A stretch of DNA of 62,938 nucleotides, the filler included, from Octopus bimaculoides (lineage: Eukaryota): the NCBI RefSeq assembly GCF_001194135.2. It is 11 parts of 8 records of this genome, joined end to end, with 100 filler letters (N's around TTAATTAATTAA, not from the genome) between each part and the next. Parts side by side here need not be neighbours in the genome. Positions count along the whole stretch, not along the records: positions 19,738 to 25,092 come from NW_026295723.1; 10 more parts are not named here. One strand, given 5' to 3'. The translations under genes and the position numbers were made by a program. Each line of letters begins with the position of its first letter. Within the stretch, counting starts at the first letter, position 1. This document shows, piece after piece, positions 20,528 to 24,099 of this stretch. The notes beneath the pieces were generated by a model that was not told the DNA's origin, made no database searches, and saw only the letters and a program-made list of their open reading frames with translations.

Positions 20528-20674
20528 TTCGATTTTTCTTAAACTTGTAAATGCAGAGACCAGTTACAATTGAAAAAATAATGCCGAGTTTCACAAGGCC
20601 CATTGTGAAAATGCTGGATGTGTTGCTGGTTCTTGTTTCATTAGATTCAATTCTTTTCGCTATCGTTCCCTGAT
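20528..20674 (-). CDS. Putative stalk + transmembrane exon of an Ig-like type I membrane protein
   Basis: Strong acceptor ttccattgttcatcttttgcag, phase 1. Encodes QGTIAKRIESNETRTSNTSSIFTMGLVKLGIIFSIVTGLCIYKFKKNR: N-glycosylation sequons, a hydrophobic helix and a basic stop-transfer. The donor is uncertain (GTAACA after 20528, GTATAA after 20515, or read-through to the stop at 20415). Confidence 0.62.
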
Positions 20675-20818
20675 CTGCAAAAGATGAACAATGGAACATA
20701 TACCTTTTGATTTAAATTTTTTTAAATAGTAACATCTGCCAGGCTTGGCCCTTTAGATAGCAACTTGCTCGAAATTGCCCTTGTTTCTATTGTACAAACT
20801 CCTTGTTTTAAAGAGATC

Positions 20819-21011
20819 GGATCTTTTTGGTTTGACGGGCAACACTTGTTTTTTTTTTCTGGACGACAATTTTTTTACATGAAATAACTTCGAATACAAA
20901 ATTTTTTGTCTGTTCTATAACACAAAATATACAAGTATTCGAAGTTTGAAAGTGTTTCGGTACCAAAAATACTACATAAAAAAATGTTGCCCGTCAAAAC
21001 CAAAAAGATCC
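20819..21011. mobile_element. 193-bp MITE with GG-start TIRs and perfect 8-bp TSD (Merlin/MULE-like)
   Basis: TIRs ggatctttttggtttgacgggcaaca / tgttgcccgtcaaaaccaaaaagatcc; TSD AAGAGATC at 20811-20818 and 21012-21019; internal IR aacttcgaatac / gtattcgaagtt. Confidence 0.88.
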
Positions 21012-21597
21012 AAGAGATCTAAAAGAAAAACCTTCCTTATATTCCTAAACCTAACTTAGTAATGACAAGGTTATTTTACTAAATTCTTCATCATTTTCGA
21101 AATTTATTTAAACAAAGGCAATGTACTTCAACAGAAATATGGTAAGAAACTTATTAACACACACCAATATCCCAGACTACCACATCTAAAAGATTAGATG
21201 TTCCCCTTCAGATCAGTCCATCATGTAGGAAGGTTATATATAGCATTAGCAAAGGGGATTGACTTTCTAACACAAAAACGAAAGGTCAACAGATCAGTCC
21301 ATCATTTAGAAGGGTTGTATAGCATTAGCAAAAACAGTGGTTCTGTCAATTTTTGCTATTAATAAGAAATTGGAGAATGTCGATCCTTTCGATAACAATT
21401 AGATAGCTCAATAGACAGATGATCCTAGAGAATGAAACTAACTTGTCCATTCAGTCAACTATAAATATATCCCACCATGAGTTAGGAAAATTTATCAATT
21501 TAAAACAGAACAGAAAAACGAATATAGAAGCAAACCTTGAAACTGTCAAGTTACAAATTTTGAATTTACTTAAGTATTATGAAAATATTTGCATCAC

Positions 21598-21634
<37 letters not shown>

Positions 21635-21644
21635 TTAAGTGGGA

Positions 21645-21856
21645 AGGTGGTGAGCTGGCAGAATCATTAACACGTCGGACGAAATACTTAGTGGTACTTC
21701 TCCTGCCGCTATGTTCTGAGTTCAAATTCCGCTGAGGTCGACTTTGCCTTTCATCCGCTCGGGGTCGATAAATTTAGTACCAGTTGAACACTGGGGTCGA
21801 TGAAATCGACTCAACCCCTCCCCCAAAATTGCTGCCCTTGTGGCAAAATTTGAAAC

Positions 21857-21860
<4 letters not shown>
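21645..21860 (+). mobile_element. tRNA-head SINE (ctttgcctttcatcc core) with (ATT)n tail
   Basis: aaggtggtgagctggcagaatc...gttcaaattccgctgaggtcgactttgcctttcatcc...ccaaaatttgaaacc. Confidence 0.85.
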
Positions 21861-21892
<32 letters not shown>

Positions 21893-22168
21893 ANNNNNNN
21901 NNNNNNNNNNNNNNNNNNNNNNNNNNNNNNNNNNNNNNNNNNNNNNNNNNNNNNNNNNNNNNNNNNNNNNNNNNNNNNNNNNNNNNNNNNNNNNNNNNNN
22001 NNNNNNNNNNNNNNNNNNNNNNGCATAGCAGCATATCATCCGTCTTTTTTCTCTGAGTTCAAATTCCACCGGGGGTCGATAAATTAAGTACCAGTAAAAC
22101 ACTGGGGTCGATGTAATCGACTAATCCCCTTCCCCAAAATTTCAGGCTTTGTGCCTATAGCAGCAACG

Positions 22169-22200
<32 letters not shown>

Positions 22201-22201
<1 letters not shown>

Positions 22202-22311
22202 GAAAATATCGCACAGTATCCAGTATTCCTCCAGGTGTATATTTCTGTTTATCGGAAGTTTAAAACCTGNNNNNNNNNNGCCCGGTACTGCATCCGGGCA
22301 TTTATTATTAC

Positions 22312-22342
<31 letters not shown>

Positions 22343-22433
22343 GAAAATATCGCACAGTATCCAGTATTCCTCCAGGTGTATATTTCTGTTTATCGGAAGT
22401 TTAAAACCTGCCTGGTACTGCATCCGGGCATTT
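22201..22433 (-). repeat. Two tandem ~92-bp modules embedded in (AAT)n arrays
   Basis: 22201-22303 (contains 10 N) and 22342-22433 are near-identical (cccgg vs cctgg), and each is flanked by (ATT)n. Confidence 0.8.
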
Positions 22434-22610
22434 ATTATTATTATTATTATAAATTATTATTATTATTATTATTATTATTATAATTATTATTATTATTATA
22501 ATTATTATTATTATAAATTATTATTATTATTATAAATTATTATTATCATTATAAATTATTATTATTATTATTATTATAAATTATTATTATTATTATTATT
22601 ATTTACTTAC

Positions 22611-22859
22611 TGCTTAGCTTCAAATGAATTATTCCACCGTTTATGTTCGCATCCTCAAACTTCCAAGTCAAACATTCCTCAGTTACTTGTCTGATCCAAA
22701 GAAGAGAACCGTTGCCCGTCTGGAAAACTTTGAATTCATTATTGTTAGCGCATGTCAAGTCACATTCGAACTTATGATTTTGGCATTGCCACACCACCGG
22801 TCTCCGCATGTTTGGTACGTGTATATAAAGAGTGACAGCTTCTCCAAGCACAGCATTTC
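22611..22859 (-). CDS. Ig-like domain exon (non-canonical V/I-set-like) of a putative membrane protein
   Basis: Acceptor ctttatttcag and perfect donor GTAAGT; 249 nt, phase 1-1, no stops. Encodes NAVLGEAVTLYIHVPNMRRPVVWQCQNHKFECDLTCANNNEFKVFQTGNGSLLWIRQVTEECLTWKFEDANINGGIIHLKLS, with a beta-strand pattern of G.xVTL, C-strand W and SLxIxxV. Confidence 0.82.
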
Positions 22860-22879
22860 CTGAAATAAAGAAATCAAGT

Positions 22880-23505
22880 AAGAAGTTTGCTTCCCAACAT
22901 CATGGTTCTAGGTTCAGTCCCACAGCATAGCACCCTGGGCAAGCGTCTTCTACTTAAGGCGGCGAGCTGGCAGAAACGCTAAGCACGCCGGGCGAAATGC
23001 TTAGCGGTATTTCGTCTGGCGTTACGTTCTGAGTTCAAATTCCGCTGAGGTCGACTTTGCCTTTCATCCTTTCGGGGTCGATAAATTAAGTACCAGTGAA
23101 GCACTGGGTCGATGTAATCGACTTAATCCCTTTGTCTGTCCTTGTTTGCCCCTCTATGTTTATTCCCTTGTGGGCAATAAAGAAATAAGCGTCTTCTACT
23201 ATAGCCTTGGGGACGATTAAAGCCACGGTGGGGGGGGGGACTTTGTAGACGGAAACTAATAGTCCATAACGTGTGTGTGTGCTTGTATGGGTGTGTGTGT
23301 GTGTGTGTGTATGTGTGTGCCTGTGTCTGTGCTTGACAATCGGTGTAGGTGTGTTTACGTCCCTGTAACATAGCGGTTCGACAATAGACCAATAGAATAA
23401 GTGCCAGACTTAAAATAAGTACTGGAGCCGATTCATTCGACTAAAAATTCTTCATGGTGGTGCCCCAGTATGGCCTTAGTCTAATAACTGAAACAAGTAA
23501 AAGAT
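22880..23505 (+). mobile_element. Composite CORE-like SINE interrupted by a second SINE
   Basis: Head (agtttgcttcccaac...gggcaagcgtcttctact) resumes as atagcc after the insertion, followed by (TG)n and the tail. Confidence 0.85.
22955..23186 (+). mobile_element. Full-length tRNA-head SINE with 14-bp TSD
   Basis: TSD AAGCGTCTTCTACT at 22941-22954 and 23187-23200. Confidence 0.93.
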
Positions 23506-24060
23506 CATCATCGTTTTAGCGCTTACTTTTACATACCTGAATGTATGTTTTCATTTTCAACAGTGGGGCGCTTTTCCTGTCACCAACCTCCATCTCTTTA
23601 CAAACATATAGATATAACATACGATTCTATAGAATAACAAACAGCCTGCACATATTTTACACCGAGAACAGGAAACAAATGACGCTGTAAAAAAAACGAG
23701 CCTTTTGTTTACTAACATTGTGTAATACCTCAAACAGCCCAGACTTCAAGCAAATGACATCGCTGGGAAAACCATTGATTACAAACTAGCAAATGTAAGG
23801 GAATTAATGAAATCTTTAGCCTTCCTCAATGGGAAACTCTAAAGAAAGCGGATTCAAAACCGTAGTTGTATCTAAAGAACAGTCACTATCATTGACTGAG
23901 TTGCACTAGTGAACTGCCTGCTCGTAATAAAAAAAATATAAGTGAATCAAAAAACAAAACAGTGACTAGAAACTCTGAGTTAAGAGAAAAAAAATAGAAA
24001 ACAGATTCGAAAAGATAGTGTCAAGTTTGAAAGGAGAAAATGATTTGTTAATCTGTTTAC

Positions 24061-24099
24061 CATTTTGGATAATTTCATGAATTTCTGTTCTTGTCAAAC
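24061..24099 (-). CDS. Putative 39-nt mini-exon upstream of the Ig-like exon
   Basis: Strong acceptor ttttgttttcgtcttctacag and donor GTAAAC. Phase 1-1 and open (GLTRTEIHEIIQNG), in frame with the 22859 exon. Confidence 0.6.

Follow-up and report, generated by a model that had tools for sequence, protein, structure and literature searches.

The 3' coding exons of Octopus bimaculoides LOC106876468 as a probable member of an octopod multigene family with a predicted immunoglobulin-like module

Introduction

Three short open segments on the minus strand of an Octopus bimaculoides scaffold raise the question of whether they belong to a real gene, and whether the domain that they encode can be an immunoglobulin (Ig) domain when both of its canonical cysteines are missing. 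They lie between positions 20528 and 24099 of a stretch of 62,938 nucleotides (nt) joined from 11 parts of 8 records of this genome, here called the window, and all positions given without a locus name refer to it. A previous description made from the letters of the DNA, the sequence-only reading, had proposed an unannotated, three-exon type I membrane protein of a lineage-specific family. The analysis reported here identifies the gene as LOC106876468 and favours, with a probability of about 0.8 for gene, family and fold together, the reading that its 3' four coding exons are an intact member of a multigene family found only in octopods (among named entries) and carrying a predicted Ig-like module. 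A function as recognition receptor is put forward more tentatively, at rather less than an even chance.

Cephalopod genomes contain many taxon-restricted genes annotated as "uncharacterized", and few of them have even a fold assigned. Many but not all domains of the immunoglobulin superfamily (IgSF) have a disulfide between strands B and F, and a family in which the Ig fold was kept after the loss of this bond would be a test case.

The gene and its annotation

Reverse-complemented, positions 19738-25092 correspond with 100% identity to the first 5,355 nt of a locus (L001) taken from scaffold LGKD02000836.1 (29,957 nt; assembly GCA_001194135.2), of which they form the terminal part. The piece is AT-rich animal DNA with many repeats and is bordered by the scaffold end upstream of the gene and by a 1,089-N gap downstream. 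The three minus-strand exons (Table 1) are present with canonical splice sites and phase 1 junctions, and join into exactly the peptide that had been given. They are annotated, contrary to what had been supposed: a search with the peptide that they encode together leads to XP_014780518.2, a protein of 129 amino acids (aa) entered as "uncharacterized protein LOC106876468 [Octopus bimaculoides]" and identical at 100% from the Met of exon 2 through exon 3. The same cluster holds UniParc UPI00071E4A8D (158 aa; P0002), presumably an earlier version of the LOC106876468 model, which begins LTRTEIHEIIQNG-NAVLGE... and reproduces the exon 1-2 and exon 2-3 joins exactly. The gene predictor gives independent support for both joins.

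The domain's linker and A strand are encoded by exon 1 on the scaffold, as (x)LTRTEIHEIIQN(G). Despite its number, this exon is not where the gene starts; only the last two bases (GT) of its leading codon are on the scaffold, the G that had opened the earlier peptide being a guess. Exon 2 supplies residues 14-95, which make up strands A' to G. Exon 3 carries a stalk rich in Ser/Thr, with sequons NET and NTS, then the transmembrane helix IFTMGLVKLGIIFSIVTGLCIY and the basic stop-transfer segment KFKKNRSNNKT. The bounds of the domain coincide with phase 1 introns, as expected for the IgSF, and do so also in LOC106883582 and in the Octopus sinensis orthologue; the position of the A strand on a separate 39-nt exon is unusual for an Ig domain.

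The count of three exons stood as far as three exons exist, and had to be amended at the 3' end. Exon 3 had been ended at 20528, where the candidate donor A/GTAACA has GG at the same place in O. sinensis. The donor AC/GTATAAG, 13 nt further on, is conserved in O. sinensis and is also used by the RefSeq model, and therefore exon 3 ends at 20515. Comparison with the orthologue, rather than transcripts, makes a fourth coding mini-exon of 19 nt likely: its acceptor (tttgtttcag/G), frame and TAG are kept relative to the last coding exon of O. sinensis XP_029652183, and the C-terminus would become ...KKNRSNNKT-PDHNI, against ...KKHRRNHSK-SDQYI in O. sinensis. With intron 3 unspliced the frame stays open as far as a stop codon at 20417-20415; this read-through stretch differs from O. 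sinensis by an indel of 5 nt, which argues that it is non-coding.

At the 5' side, no signal-peptide exon was found in the 994 nt that are all the scaffold offers upstream of exon 1, and the ATG-containing open reading frames (ORFs) there were rejected, being in repeat sequence and in the wrong phase. In the O. sinensis orthologue some 3.2 kb separate the signal-peptide exon from the exon 1 counterpart downstream of it, which places the missing exon beyond the end of the O. bimaculoides scaffold, as the sequence-only reading had held.

The orthologue is O. sinensis LOC115225372 (P0004, 292 aa; chromosome CM016885.1 at 19.0 Mb; locus L003). It is collinear with the piece at 80-92% nucleotide identity, introns included, and the eight splice sites of the four exons are all canonical and all conserved in it. 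An exon homologous to the 39-nt exon 1 was found in LOC106883582 and in LOC115225372, in the latter with the same AG/GT sites. Homologous exons in a related genome, one of the checks that had been proposed, are therefore available with conserved splice sites.

The RefSeq model of LOC106876468 is wrong at both ends, with an internal Met start and an out-of-frame terminal exon. Both database models extend past KKNR to ...SNNKT and then add SRNNNNRRY and a stop from an exon beyond the 1,089-N gap (L001:7300-7328). Read in the phase of the family, L001:7300-7447 is a paralogous stalk and transmembrane exon (xQETTTTEDIESNTTGTRNIRMPAMLGIIVAIAVCDYRFHKKSKERQ and a stop), preceded by a copy, about 78% identical, of the tail of intron 2 and followed by similar 3' untranslated sequence. 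RefSeq therefore takes the first 29 nt of a neighbour out of frame. A paralogue next to LOC106876468, its 5' exons falling in the gap, is the probable source of this exon; no counterpart occurs within 10 kb downstream of the O. sinensis orthologue, and no further family exons were identified on L001.

An octopod gene family

The family was delimited by an exhaustive phmmer (HMMER) search of 1.84 billion representative proteins at E<=1e-3, which returned 27 matches, 22 of them at E<=1e-10. An indexed protein search had returned only the gene itself with a single protein as query, and only 11 members with an alignment. Two of the 27 are evidently spurious. P0026 (594 aa) consists of bacterial-looking repeats (TSDGNSGSPKTVTI...GGGSMVWIAEVT..STWAHITSG) and its E of 3e-8, added up from five weak stretches against GNGSLLWIRQVTEECLTWKF, was taken to reflect a chance likeness of motif that the repeats inflate; P0028 matches over a 26-residue stretch. 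The named relatives come only from O. bimaculoides, O. sinensis, O. vulgaris and Argonauta hians, all octopods, in agreement with the lineage-specific family that had been suspected. All are "uncharacterized" or "hypothetical" and lack a Pfam domain. Six of the family's LOC identifiers, LOC106876468 among them, are unmentioned in the literature searched, where the family is undescribed; it is a taxon-restricted family that nobody appears to have characterised.

The architecture comprises a signal peptide, one to four tandem modules with a period of 96 aa, a stalk, a hydrophobic segment and a very short or absent tail. The gene plan, formed by a signal-peptide exon ending in phase 1, a 39-nt exon, an exon of about 249 nt and a stalk/transmembrane exon, recurs in LOC106883582; its last three elements are present in LOC106876468 and homologous to the comparison loci. 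In six of six genomic loci scanned the large domain exon is a single ORF. The module of LOC106876468 matches the family hidden Markov model (HMM) at E=1.9e-46, and the exon 2 ORF taken singly matches an HMM of the octopod family at E=9e-42. Every invariant or near-invariant residue (W36, E44, C45, C49, V57, W78, F80, D82 and L92) is kept, and with them the family motif W36, E44-C45-x3-C49, W78-x-F80-x-D82.

These exons are part of a transcribed octopod gene family. A contig of 1,067 nt in the Logan assembly of run SRR3401912 contains a 5' untranslated region, an uninterrupted ORF of 138 codons and a 3' untranslated region, a complete family member; lacking introns and having the predicted junctions, it is most likely a spliced mRNA. 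The paralogue count that had been suggested as a check gave at least 12 annotated loci in O. bimaculoides, of which five lie on CM046629.1, a chromosome of 12 Mb (two of these at 1.0-1.1 Mb, a further one at 9.5 Mb), and at least 8 in O. sinensis on CM016885.1, spread over at least 6.7 Mb.

Some members depart from this plan. The subfamily of P0015, P0018, P0019, P0025 and P0027 (O. bimaculoides, O. sinensis and Argonauta hians) lacks C38 and C75 and has its N-terminal module followed by at least one Cys-rich segment of another type, about 90 aa long, with the pattern K-P-K-I-x-I...C-x-Y-x-V-x-A-x-C-S-L-P...C...F-T..., which may be a second kind of beta-sandwich domain. The single-domain proteins P0029 and P0030 (O. 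bimaculoides) end right after a hydrophobic segment of 14-17 residues preceded by small residues (SNGAQGTSG...), a C-terminus that looks more like a glycosylphosphatidylinositol attachment signal than a transmembrane anchor. P0022 (305 aa) has an array of C2H2 zinc fingers fused in frame to one family domain, with neither signal peptide nor transmembrane segment, and is most likely a chimeric gene model. At the LOC106883582 locus a degenerate, stop-interrupted copy of the family domain (L002:12003-12266, minus strand; E=2e-19) lies antisense in an intron; it is a pseudo-exon from a local inverted duplication.

Predicted fold

With an alignment of 29 domain copies as input, AlphaFold2 (AF2) predicted the module with a local distance difference score (pLDDT) of 94 and a template modelling score (pTM) of 0.86, and five runs gave pLDDT 92.6-94.0. 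Eight strands are predicted, at 9-11, 21-26, 34-38, 41-45, 55-60, 63-68, 77-81 and 87-91. Run on the 158-aa protein with no alignment, AF2 reached a pLDDT of 44 and was confident only of the transmembrane helix, a result useless for the fold. In Foldseek searches of the PDB all of the top 50 matches to the alignment-based model were Ig domains of the V-set or I-set (probability 1.00, E 7e-4 to 2e-3, template modelling scores mostly 0.5-0.66), and no fibronectin type III (FN3) domain was among them. The matches include CD8 alpha, antibody VL, nanobodies, vNAR, CTLA-4, titin M1/M4, obscurin Ig32, sDscam Ig1, Kirrel3 and a twitchin entry matching over 88 columns, which we take to be its Ig26 part. 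A search of a viral structure library led to viral Ig-like proteins. The Ig-like beta-sandwich that had been proposed is thus the fold that the model predicts, and the structural search that had been advised returned Ig-type folds rather than another sandwich. The tight D-E hairpin and the missing C'' strand make the model I-set-like, and the domain is probably a divergent IgSF variant.

Features of the sequence agree with this model. W36 is invariant in 29/29 copies and lies in the predicted strand 34-38 (strand C). The E/F motif STLWIxxVTxECLTWxF has the canonical spacing of LxIxxVxxxDxGxYxC; the counterpart of D-x-G-x-Y-x-C is E74-C75-L76-T77-W78-K79-F80, with Trp for Tyr, Phe for Cys and a position 74 that is inconsistently acidic. 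An apparent match to antibody VH (WVRQ..LEW against WIRQ..LTW) was rejected as a motif coincidence, which would put W69 in strand C, contrary to the model and to the invariant W36. Membership of the CD2/SLAM group was not supported in these comparisons, the best match (E 0.05) running across the boundary of CD2 domains 1 and 2 and conflicting with the predicted strands.

Cysteines and membrane anchor

The absence of the B and F cysteines, noted previously for this one domain, extends to the whole family: neither position has a Cys in any of the 29 copies, so the inter-sheet B-F disulfide is lacking. The B position is Ile25 in LOC106876468 (Ile in 21/29 copies, Thr in 6/29, also Val or Ala), and the F position is Phe80 (Phe in 27/29). 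The four cysteines elsewhere likewise proved to be a family-wide pattern. C45 is found in 29/29 copies and C49 in 28/29. Of the 29 copies, 15 have both C38 and C75, 10 have neither and 4 are mixed (Fisher p=3e-4, indicative only, since the copies share phylogenetic history). Another pair of cysteines, at positions 81 and 86, occurs in some of the copies without C38 and C75. The simplest reading would be that of two disulfides, C38-C75 and C45-C49. In antibody VH, Arg38, two residues after the C-strand Trp, contacts Asp86 of the E-F turn; C75 is one residue past the equivalent of Asp86, which makes a C38-C75 bridge geometrically reasonable.

The best-conserved segments of the family are the BC loop PNM(K/R)RP and strand C', and the most variable are the N-terminal linker with the A strand and the C-C' turn. 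No hypervariable loops of the kind of complementarity-determining regions were seen across the comparison of the 29 copies. Sequons occur at N62 (a position with a sequon in 17/29 copies), N107 and N113. The hydrophobic segment IFTMGLVKLGIIFSIVTGLCIY (residues 117-138, 22 aa) is predicted to be helical (helix 118-145) and is followed by KFKKNR, which points to a type I topology; with the signal peptides of the relatives, this bears out the membrane layout that had been described. The tail of about 17 residues has no recognisable motif. The lysine in the helix is not conserved, being Asn in the O. sinensis orthologue and Glu, Asn or nothing in other members.

Rate of evolution

Relative to the first domain of the O. 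sinensis orthologue, exon 2 has a ratio of nonsynonymous to synonymous substitution rates (dN/dS) of 0.73 (dN 0.18, dS 0.25; 82 codons), the value that had been called for in the earlier proposals. Evolution is fast, and these pairwise data do not separate relaxed constraint from diversifying selection. Across exon 1 with its flanks (24031-24129 against L003 13235-13340) 6/39 positions of the exon are mismatched, against 3/71 of the flanking intron, a pattern typical of regulated cassette exons or of diversifying selection.

Alternative explanations

Several points weigh against reading these exons as an intact, Ig-like member of the family. The scaffold is unplaced, gap-rich and only about 30 kb long, and lacks the 5' end of the gene; the RefSeq model now in use takes an internal Met as its start and finishes in the paralogous exon, in the wrong frame; and the protein collection holds only the RefSeq cluster for LOC106876468, with no independent transcript-derived protein. 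The dN/dS of 0.73 is high and the identity of the exon (83%) is no higher than that of the flanking introns, which indicates weak overall constraint. As to the fold, the Ig assignment comes from the predicted structure, with no significant support from sequence: no Pfam match was obtained for the LOC106876468 protein at E<=10, only 3/29 copies matched Pfam I-set/Ig_3 (best E=0.004-0.008, not significant), searches of the PDB by sequence and by profile had E-values of 0.05 for CD2, 0.67 for myotilin and 1.3 for titin, none significant, and hhalign against titin I27 gave a probability of 0.6%. The Foldseek E-values are modest. The disulfide pairing would follow from co-occurrence, not from model coordinates, and the function is arrived at wholly by inference.

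The alternative that survives best, although we consider it unlikely, is a gene with two domains as in O. sinensis, from which the collapse of a tandem duplicate at the assembly gap of intron 2 removed the second domain exon and three further exons of 39 nt. In that case the joining of exon 2 to exon 3 would be an error of assembly or, at best, an isoform with skipped exons. LOC115225372 is collinear on both sides and has four extra exons between the counterparts of exons 2 and 3, in an interval of 8.7 kb: 39-nt exons at about L003 15624-15662, 16613-16651 and 20861-20905, and a second domain exon at about L003 18995-19249. Exon 2 resembles both O. sinensis domains about equally (83.1% against 81.8% nucleotide identity), and a 129-N gap flanked by repeats, of a length that is an estimate as for all such gaps, lies in the relevant interval. 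Given these extra exons, the simple join of exon 2 to exon 3 in the real mRNA should be taken as provisional.

The gaps themselves argue the other way. Both N runs lie within intron 2 (Table 1) and no exon or reading frame crosses either of them. The 10-N run interrupts copy 2 of a tandemly repeated 141-nt unit. When this copy is set against copy 1, the sequences on either side of the run meet directly or share 1 nt (C), and nothing seems to be missing there, save possibly whole repeat units. The 129-N run interrupts a copy of a short interspersed nuclear element (SINE) about 50 nt before its 3' end, and the sequence resumes in an (AAT)n tract of the same kind as adjoins other SINE copies. A short gap, of roughly the stated size, therefore accounts for the visibly missing sequence, and continuity of intron 2 across it is plausible. 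The assembled 1.8 kb of intron 2 contains no remnant of the extra exons, and the number of domains varies from one to four among members and isoforms, single-domain members being common. A match of intron 2 to the O. sinensis intron after a mini-exon was rejected as a dispersed repeat, found also in the 3' untranslated region of L004 and elsewhere on L001.

Less probable still is a dead or dying copy, a pseudogene or haplotig fragment with exons not yet decayed and an ab initio artefact as RefSeq model. The unplaced scaffold with its missing 5' exon, the dN/dS and the conservation of the exon no better than that of the introns, the RefSeq 3' end out of frame in the neighbouring exon and the lack of an independent transcript-derived protein would all suit it, as would the 5-nt indel in the read-through tail. 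Against this, the four exons are all open, no indel occurs in 82 + 52 codons relative to the orthologue whereas the introns do have indels, the eight conserved splice sites and every family-invariant residue are intact, and the terminal mini-exon keeps its acceptor, frame and TAG.

That the Ig V/I assignment is a model artefact and the module another beta-sandwich (fibronectin type III, cadherin-like or the membrane-proximal C2 domain of CD2) is very improbable: the missing Ig sequence match, template modelling scores of only about 0.6, best PDB sequence matches to CD2 segments at the end of domain 1 and start of domain 2, and a W-x-C...C motif aligned to CD2 in a strand register differing from the model are outweighed by a top 50 all of Ig V/I-set with neither FN3 nor cadherin, by five runs of uniformly high confidence, by weak myotilin and titin alignments that share the strand register of the model, and by three of the CD2-type matches being the same rat CD2 sequence in chimeras, with all such matches non-significant.

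Comparison with known systems

The closest structural parallels of the octopod family are the I-set domains of titin M1/M4, obscurin Ig32, twitchin Ig26, myotilin and sDscam Ig1. They share with the octopod module the strand order A/A'-B-C-C'-D-E-F-G with no C'', a length of about 95 residues, the C-strand Trp and the E/E-F motif spacing L-x-I-x-x-V-x-x-x-D-x-G-x-Y-x-C (Foldseek template modelling scores 0.55-0.67). Unlike them, the octopod module has no significant Pfam I-set/Ig_3 match, has Ile/Phe for the B/F Cys and Trp for the F-strand Tyr, adds the Cys pairs C38/C75 and C45/C49, has its BC loop (PNM[KR]RP) as the best-conserved loop and is split over exons of 39 and 249 nt.

Domain 1 of CD2 and domain 1 of CD58 are V-type Ig domains that naturally lack the B-F disulfide. 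The likeness lies in a type I surface glycoprotein (predicted here) with an Ig domain stable without the canonical disulfide; the CD2 alignment spans the boundary of domains 1 and 2, out of register, and demonstrates no homology. The CD2 family is moreover a vertebrate family with long signalling tails, in which it differs from the octopod proteins.

Lineage-specific expansions of the IgSF are known in other invertebrates, such as the mollusc fibrinogen-related proteins (FREPs), arthropod Dscam/sDscam and the amphioxus V-region-containing chitin-binding proteins (VCBPs). As in these, the octopod family is taxon-restricted, multi-copy and partly clustered, with modular phase 1 exons, a variable number of domains, multiple isoforms and fast protein evolution; it differs in having no sequence relationship to them, no fibrinogen or chitin-binding partner domain and no hypervariable loops. 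Vertebrate receptors of the TREM, CD300 and NKp44 type have a single Ig domain, a charged transmembrane residue and a minimal tail. The layout of LOC106876468, with one Ig-like domain, a stalk, a transmembrane Lys (GLVKLGII) and the short motif-less tail, is analogous to theirs in layout only, and its lysine is not conserved in the family. We know of no adaptor for such signalling in cephalopods.

Proposed mechanism and significance

Under the favoured reading, the members of the family would be small glycosylated type I proteins of the cell surface, built of one to four modules of about 96 aa on a glycosylated, Ser/Thr-rich stalk, with a single transmembrane helix and a tail that is basic and very short. 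Each module would adopt an I-set-like Ig fold (strands A/A'-B-C-C'-D-E-F-G) with W36 kept and the core packing of Ile25 and Phe80 in place of the canonical B-F disulfide. C38, two residues after the Trp, may be bridged to C75 of the E-F turn, and a local bridge may close C45-x3-C49 at the end of C'. The ectodomain could serve protein-protein recognition as an adhesion molecule, ligand or co-receptor. As the protein itself lacks a signalling motif, it could signal only with the help of a partner, which the lysine of the transmembrane helix might recruit. The symmetric phase 1 modules of 39 + 249 nt would let the number of domains change by duplication or exon skipping, and this cassette would account for the variants with one to four domains and the many isoforms.

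Should this hold, the family gains a testable identity, that of a surface Ig-like module invisible to Pfam with relocated disulfides and cassette exons, and becomes a candidate for octopod-specific cell recognition. A stronger version, in which the family is an octopod innovation, is attractive and quite improbable at present, ranking between the two-domain gene and the dead copy: an orphan IgSF branch with a bridge from strand C to the E-F turn and a CxxxC clasp, shuffling its two-exon cassettes into one to four domains, many isoforms and fast-evolving surfaces, as a cell-recognition repertoire (immune or neuronal/sensory) acting through transmembrane partners. Nothing is overturned by any of this, since lineage-specific expansions of the IgSF are common in invertebrates.

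Coordinates and repeated sequences

Table 1. Features of LOC106876468 in the window (a slash marks a splice site)
Feature	Position	Strand	Description
Exon 1 on scaffold	24099-24061	minus	39 nt, phase 1-1; ...ttctacag/GTTTGAC...AAATG/gtaaacag
Intron 1	22860-24060	minus	1,201 nt; SINE copy (~23187-22954) and (GT)n run
Exon 2	22859-22611	minus	249 nt, phase 1-1; ...tatttcag/GAAATGC...AAGCA/gtaagtaa
Codon of Ile25	22824-22822	minus	exon 2
Codon of Trp36	22791-22789	minus	exon 2
Codon of Cys38	22785-22783	minus	exon 2
Codon of Cys45	22764-22762	minus	exon 2
Codon of Cys49	22752-22750	minus	exon 2
N62-G-S sequon	from 22713	minus	exon 2
Codon of Cys75	22674-22672	minus	exon 2
Codon of Trp78	22665-22663	minus	exon 2
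Codon of Phe80	22659-22657	minus	exon 2
Intron 2	20675-22610	minus	1,936 nt as assembled; both N gaps
Intron 2 content	20675-22610	minus	(AAT)n arrays, 141-nt tandem duplication, two SINE copies, element like a miniature inverted-repeat transposable element (MITE) at 20803-21027
N run	22270-22279		10 N
N run	21894-22022		129 N
Exon 3	20674-20515	minus	160 nt, phase 1 to 2; acceptor ...ttttgcag/ATCAGG, donor AC/GTATAAG
Hydrophobic segment	20612-20547	minus	exon 3
Intron 3	19843-20514	minus	672 nt; mostly (TG)n/(CA)n-like low complexity
Proposed terminal coding exon	19842-19824	minus	19 nt; G CCA GAT CAT AAC ATT TAG

The introns are rich in repeats. In intron 3, 19990-20420 is (TG)n/(CA)n-rich, and its overlapping Cys/Val-rich ORFs of 120-136 aa are composition artefacts, not genes. 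Directly after the donor of exon 2, at 22160-22480, the 141-nt unit is tandemly duplicated between (AAT)n tracts. The MITE-like element of intron 2 is about 225 nt long with imperfect terminal inverted repeats of 28-31 nt (77-86% complementary), and it has relatives in the O. sinensis locus (L003 4282-4378, 4503-4599 and 4855-4949). The SINE-like repeat has three copies on the gene strand (23187-22954, 22205-22023 and 21867-21643), of which both in intron 2 are preceded by an (AAT)n tract and the middle one is truncated by the 129-N gap. The O. sinensis locus has many copies of it too, some of them arrayed in tandem at L003 ~17400-18900.

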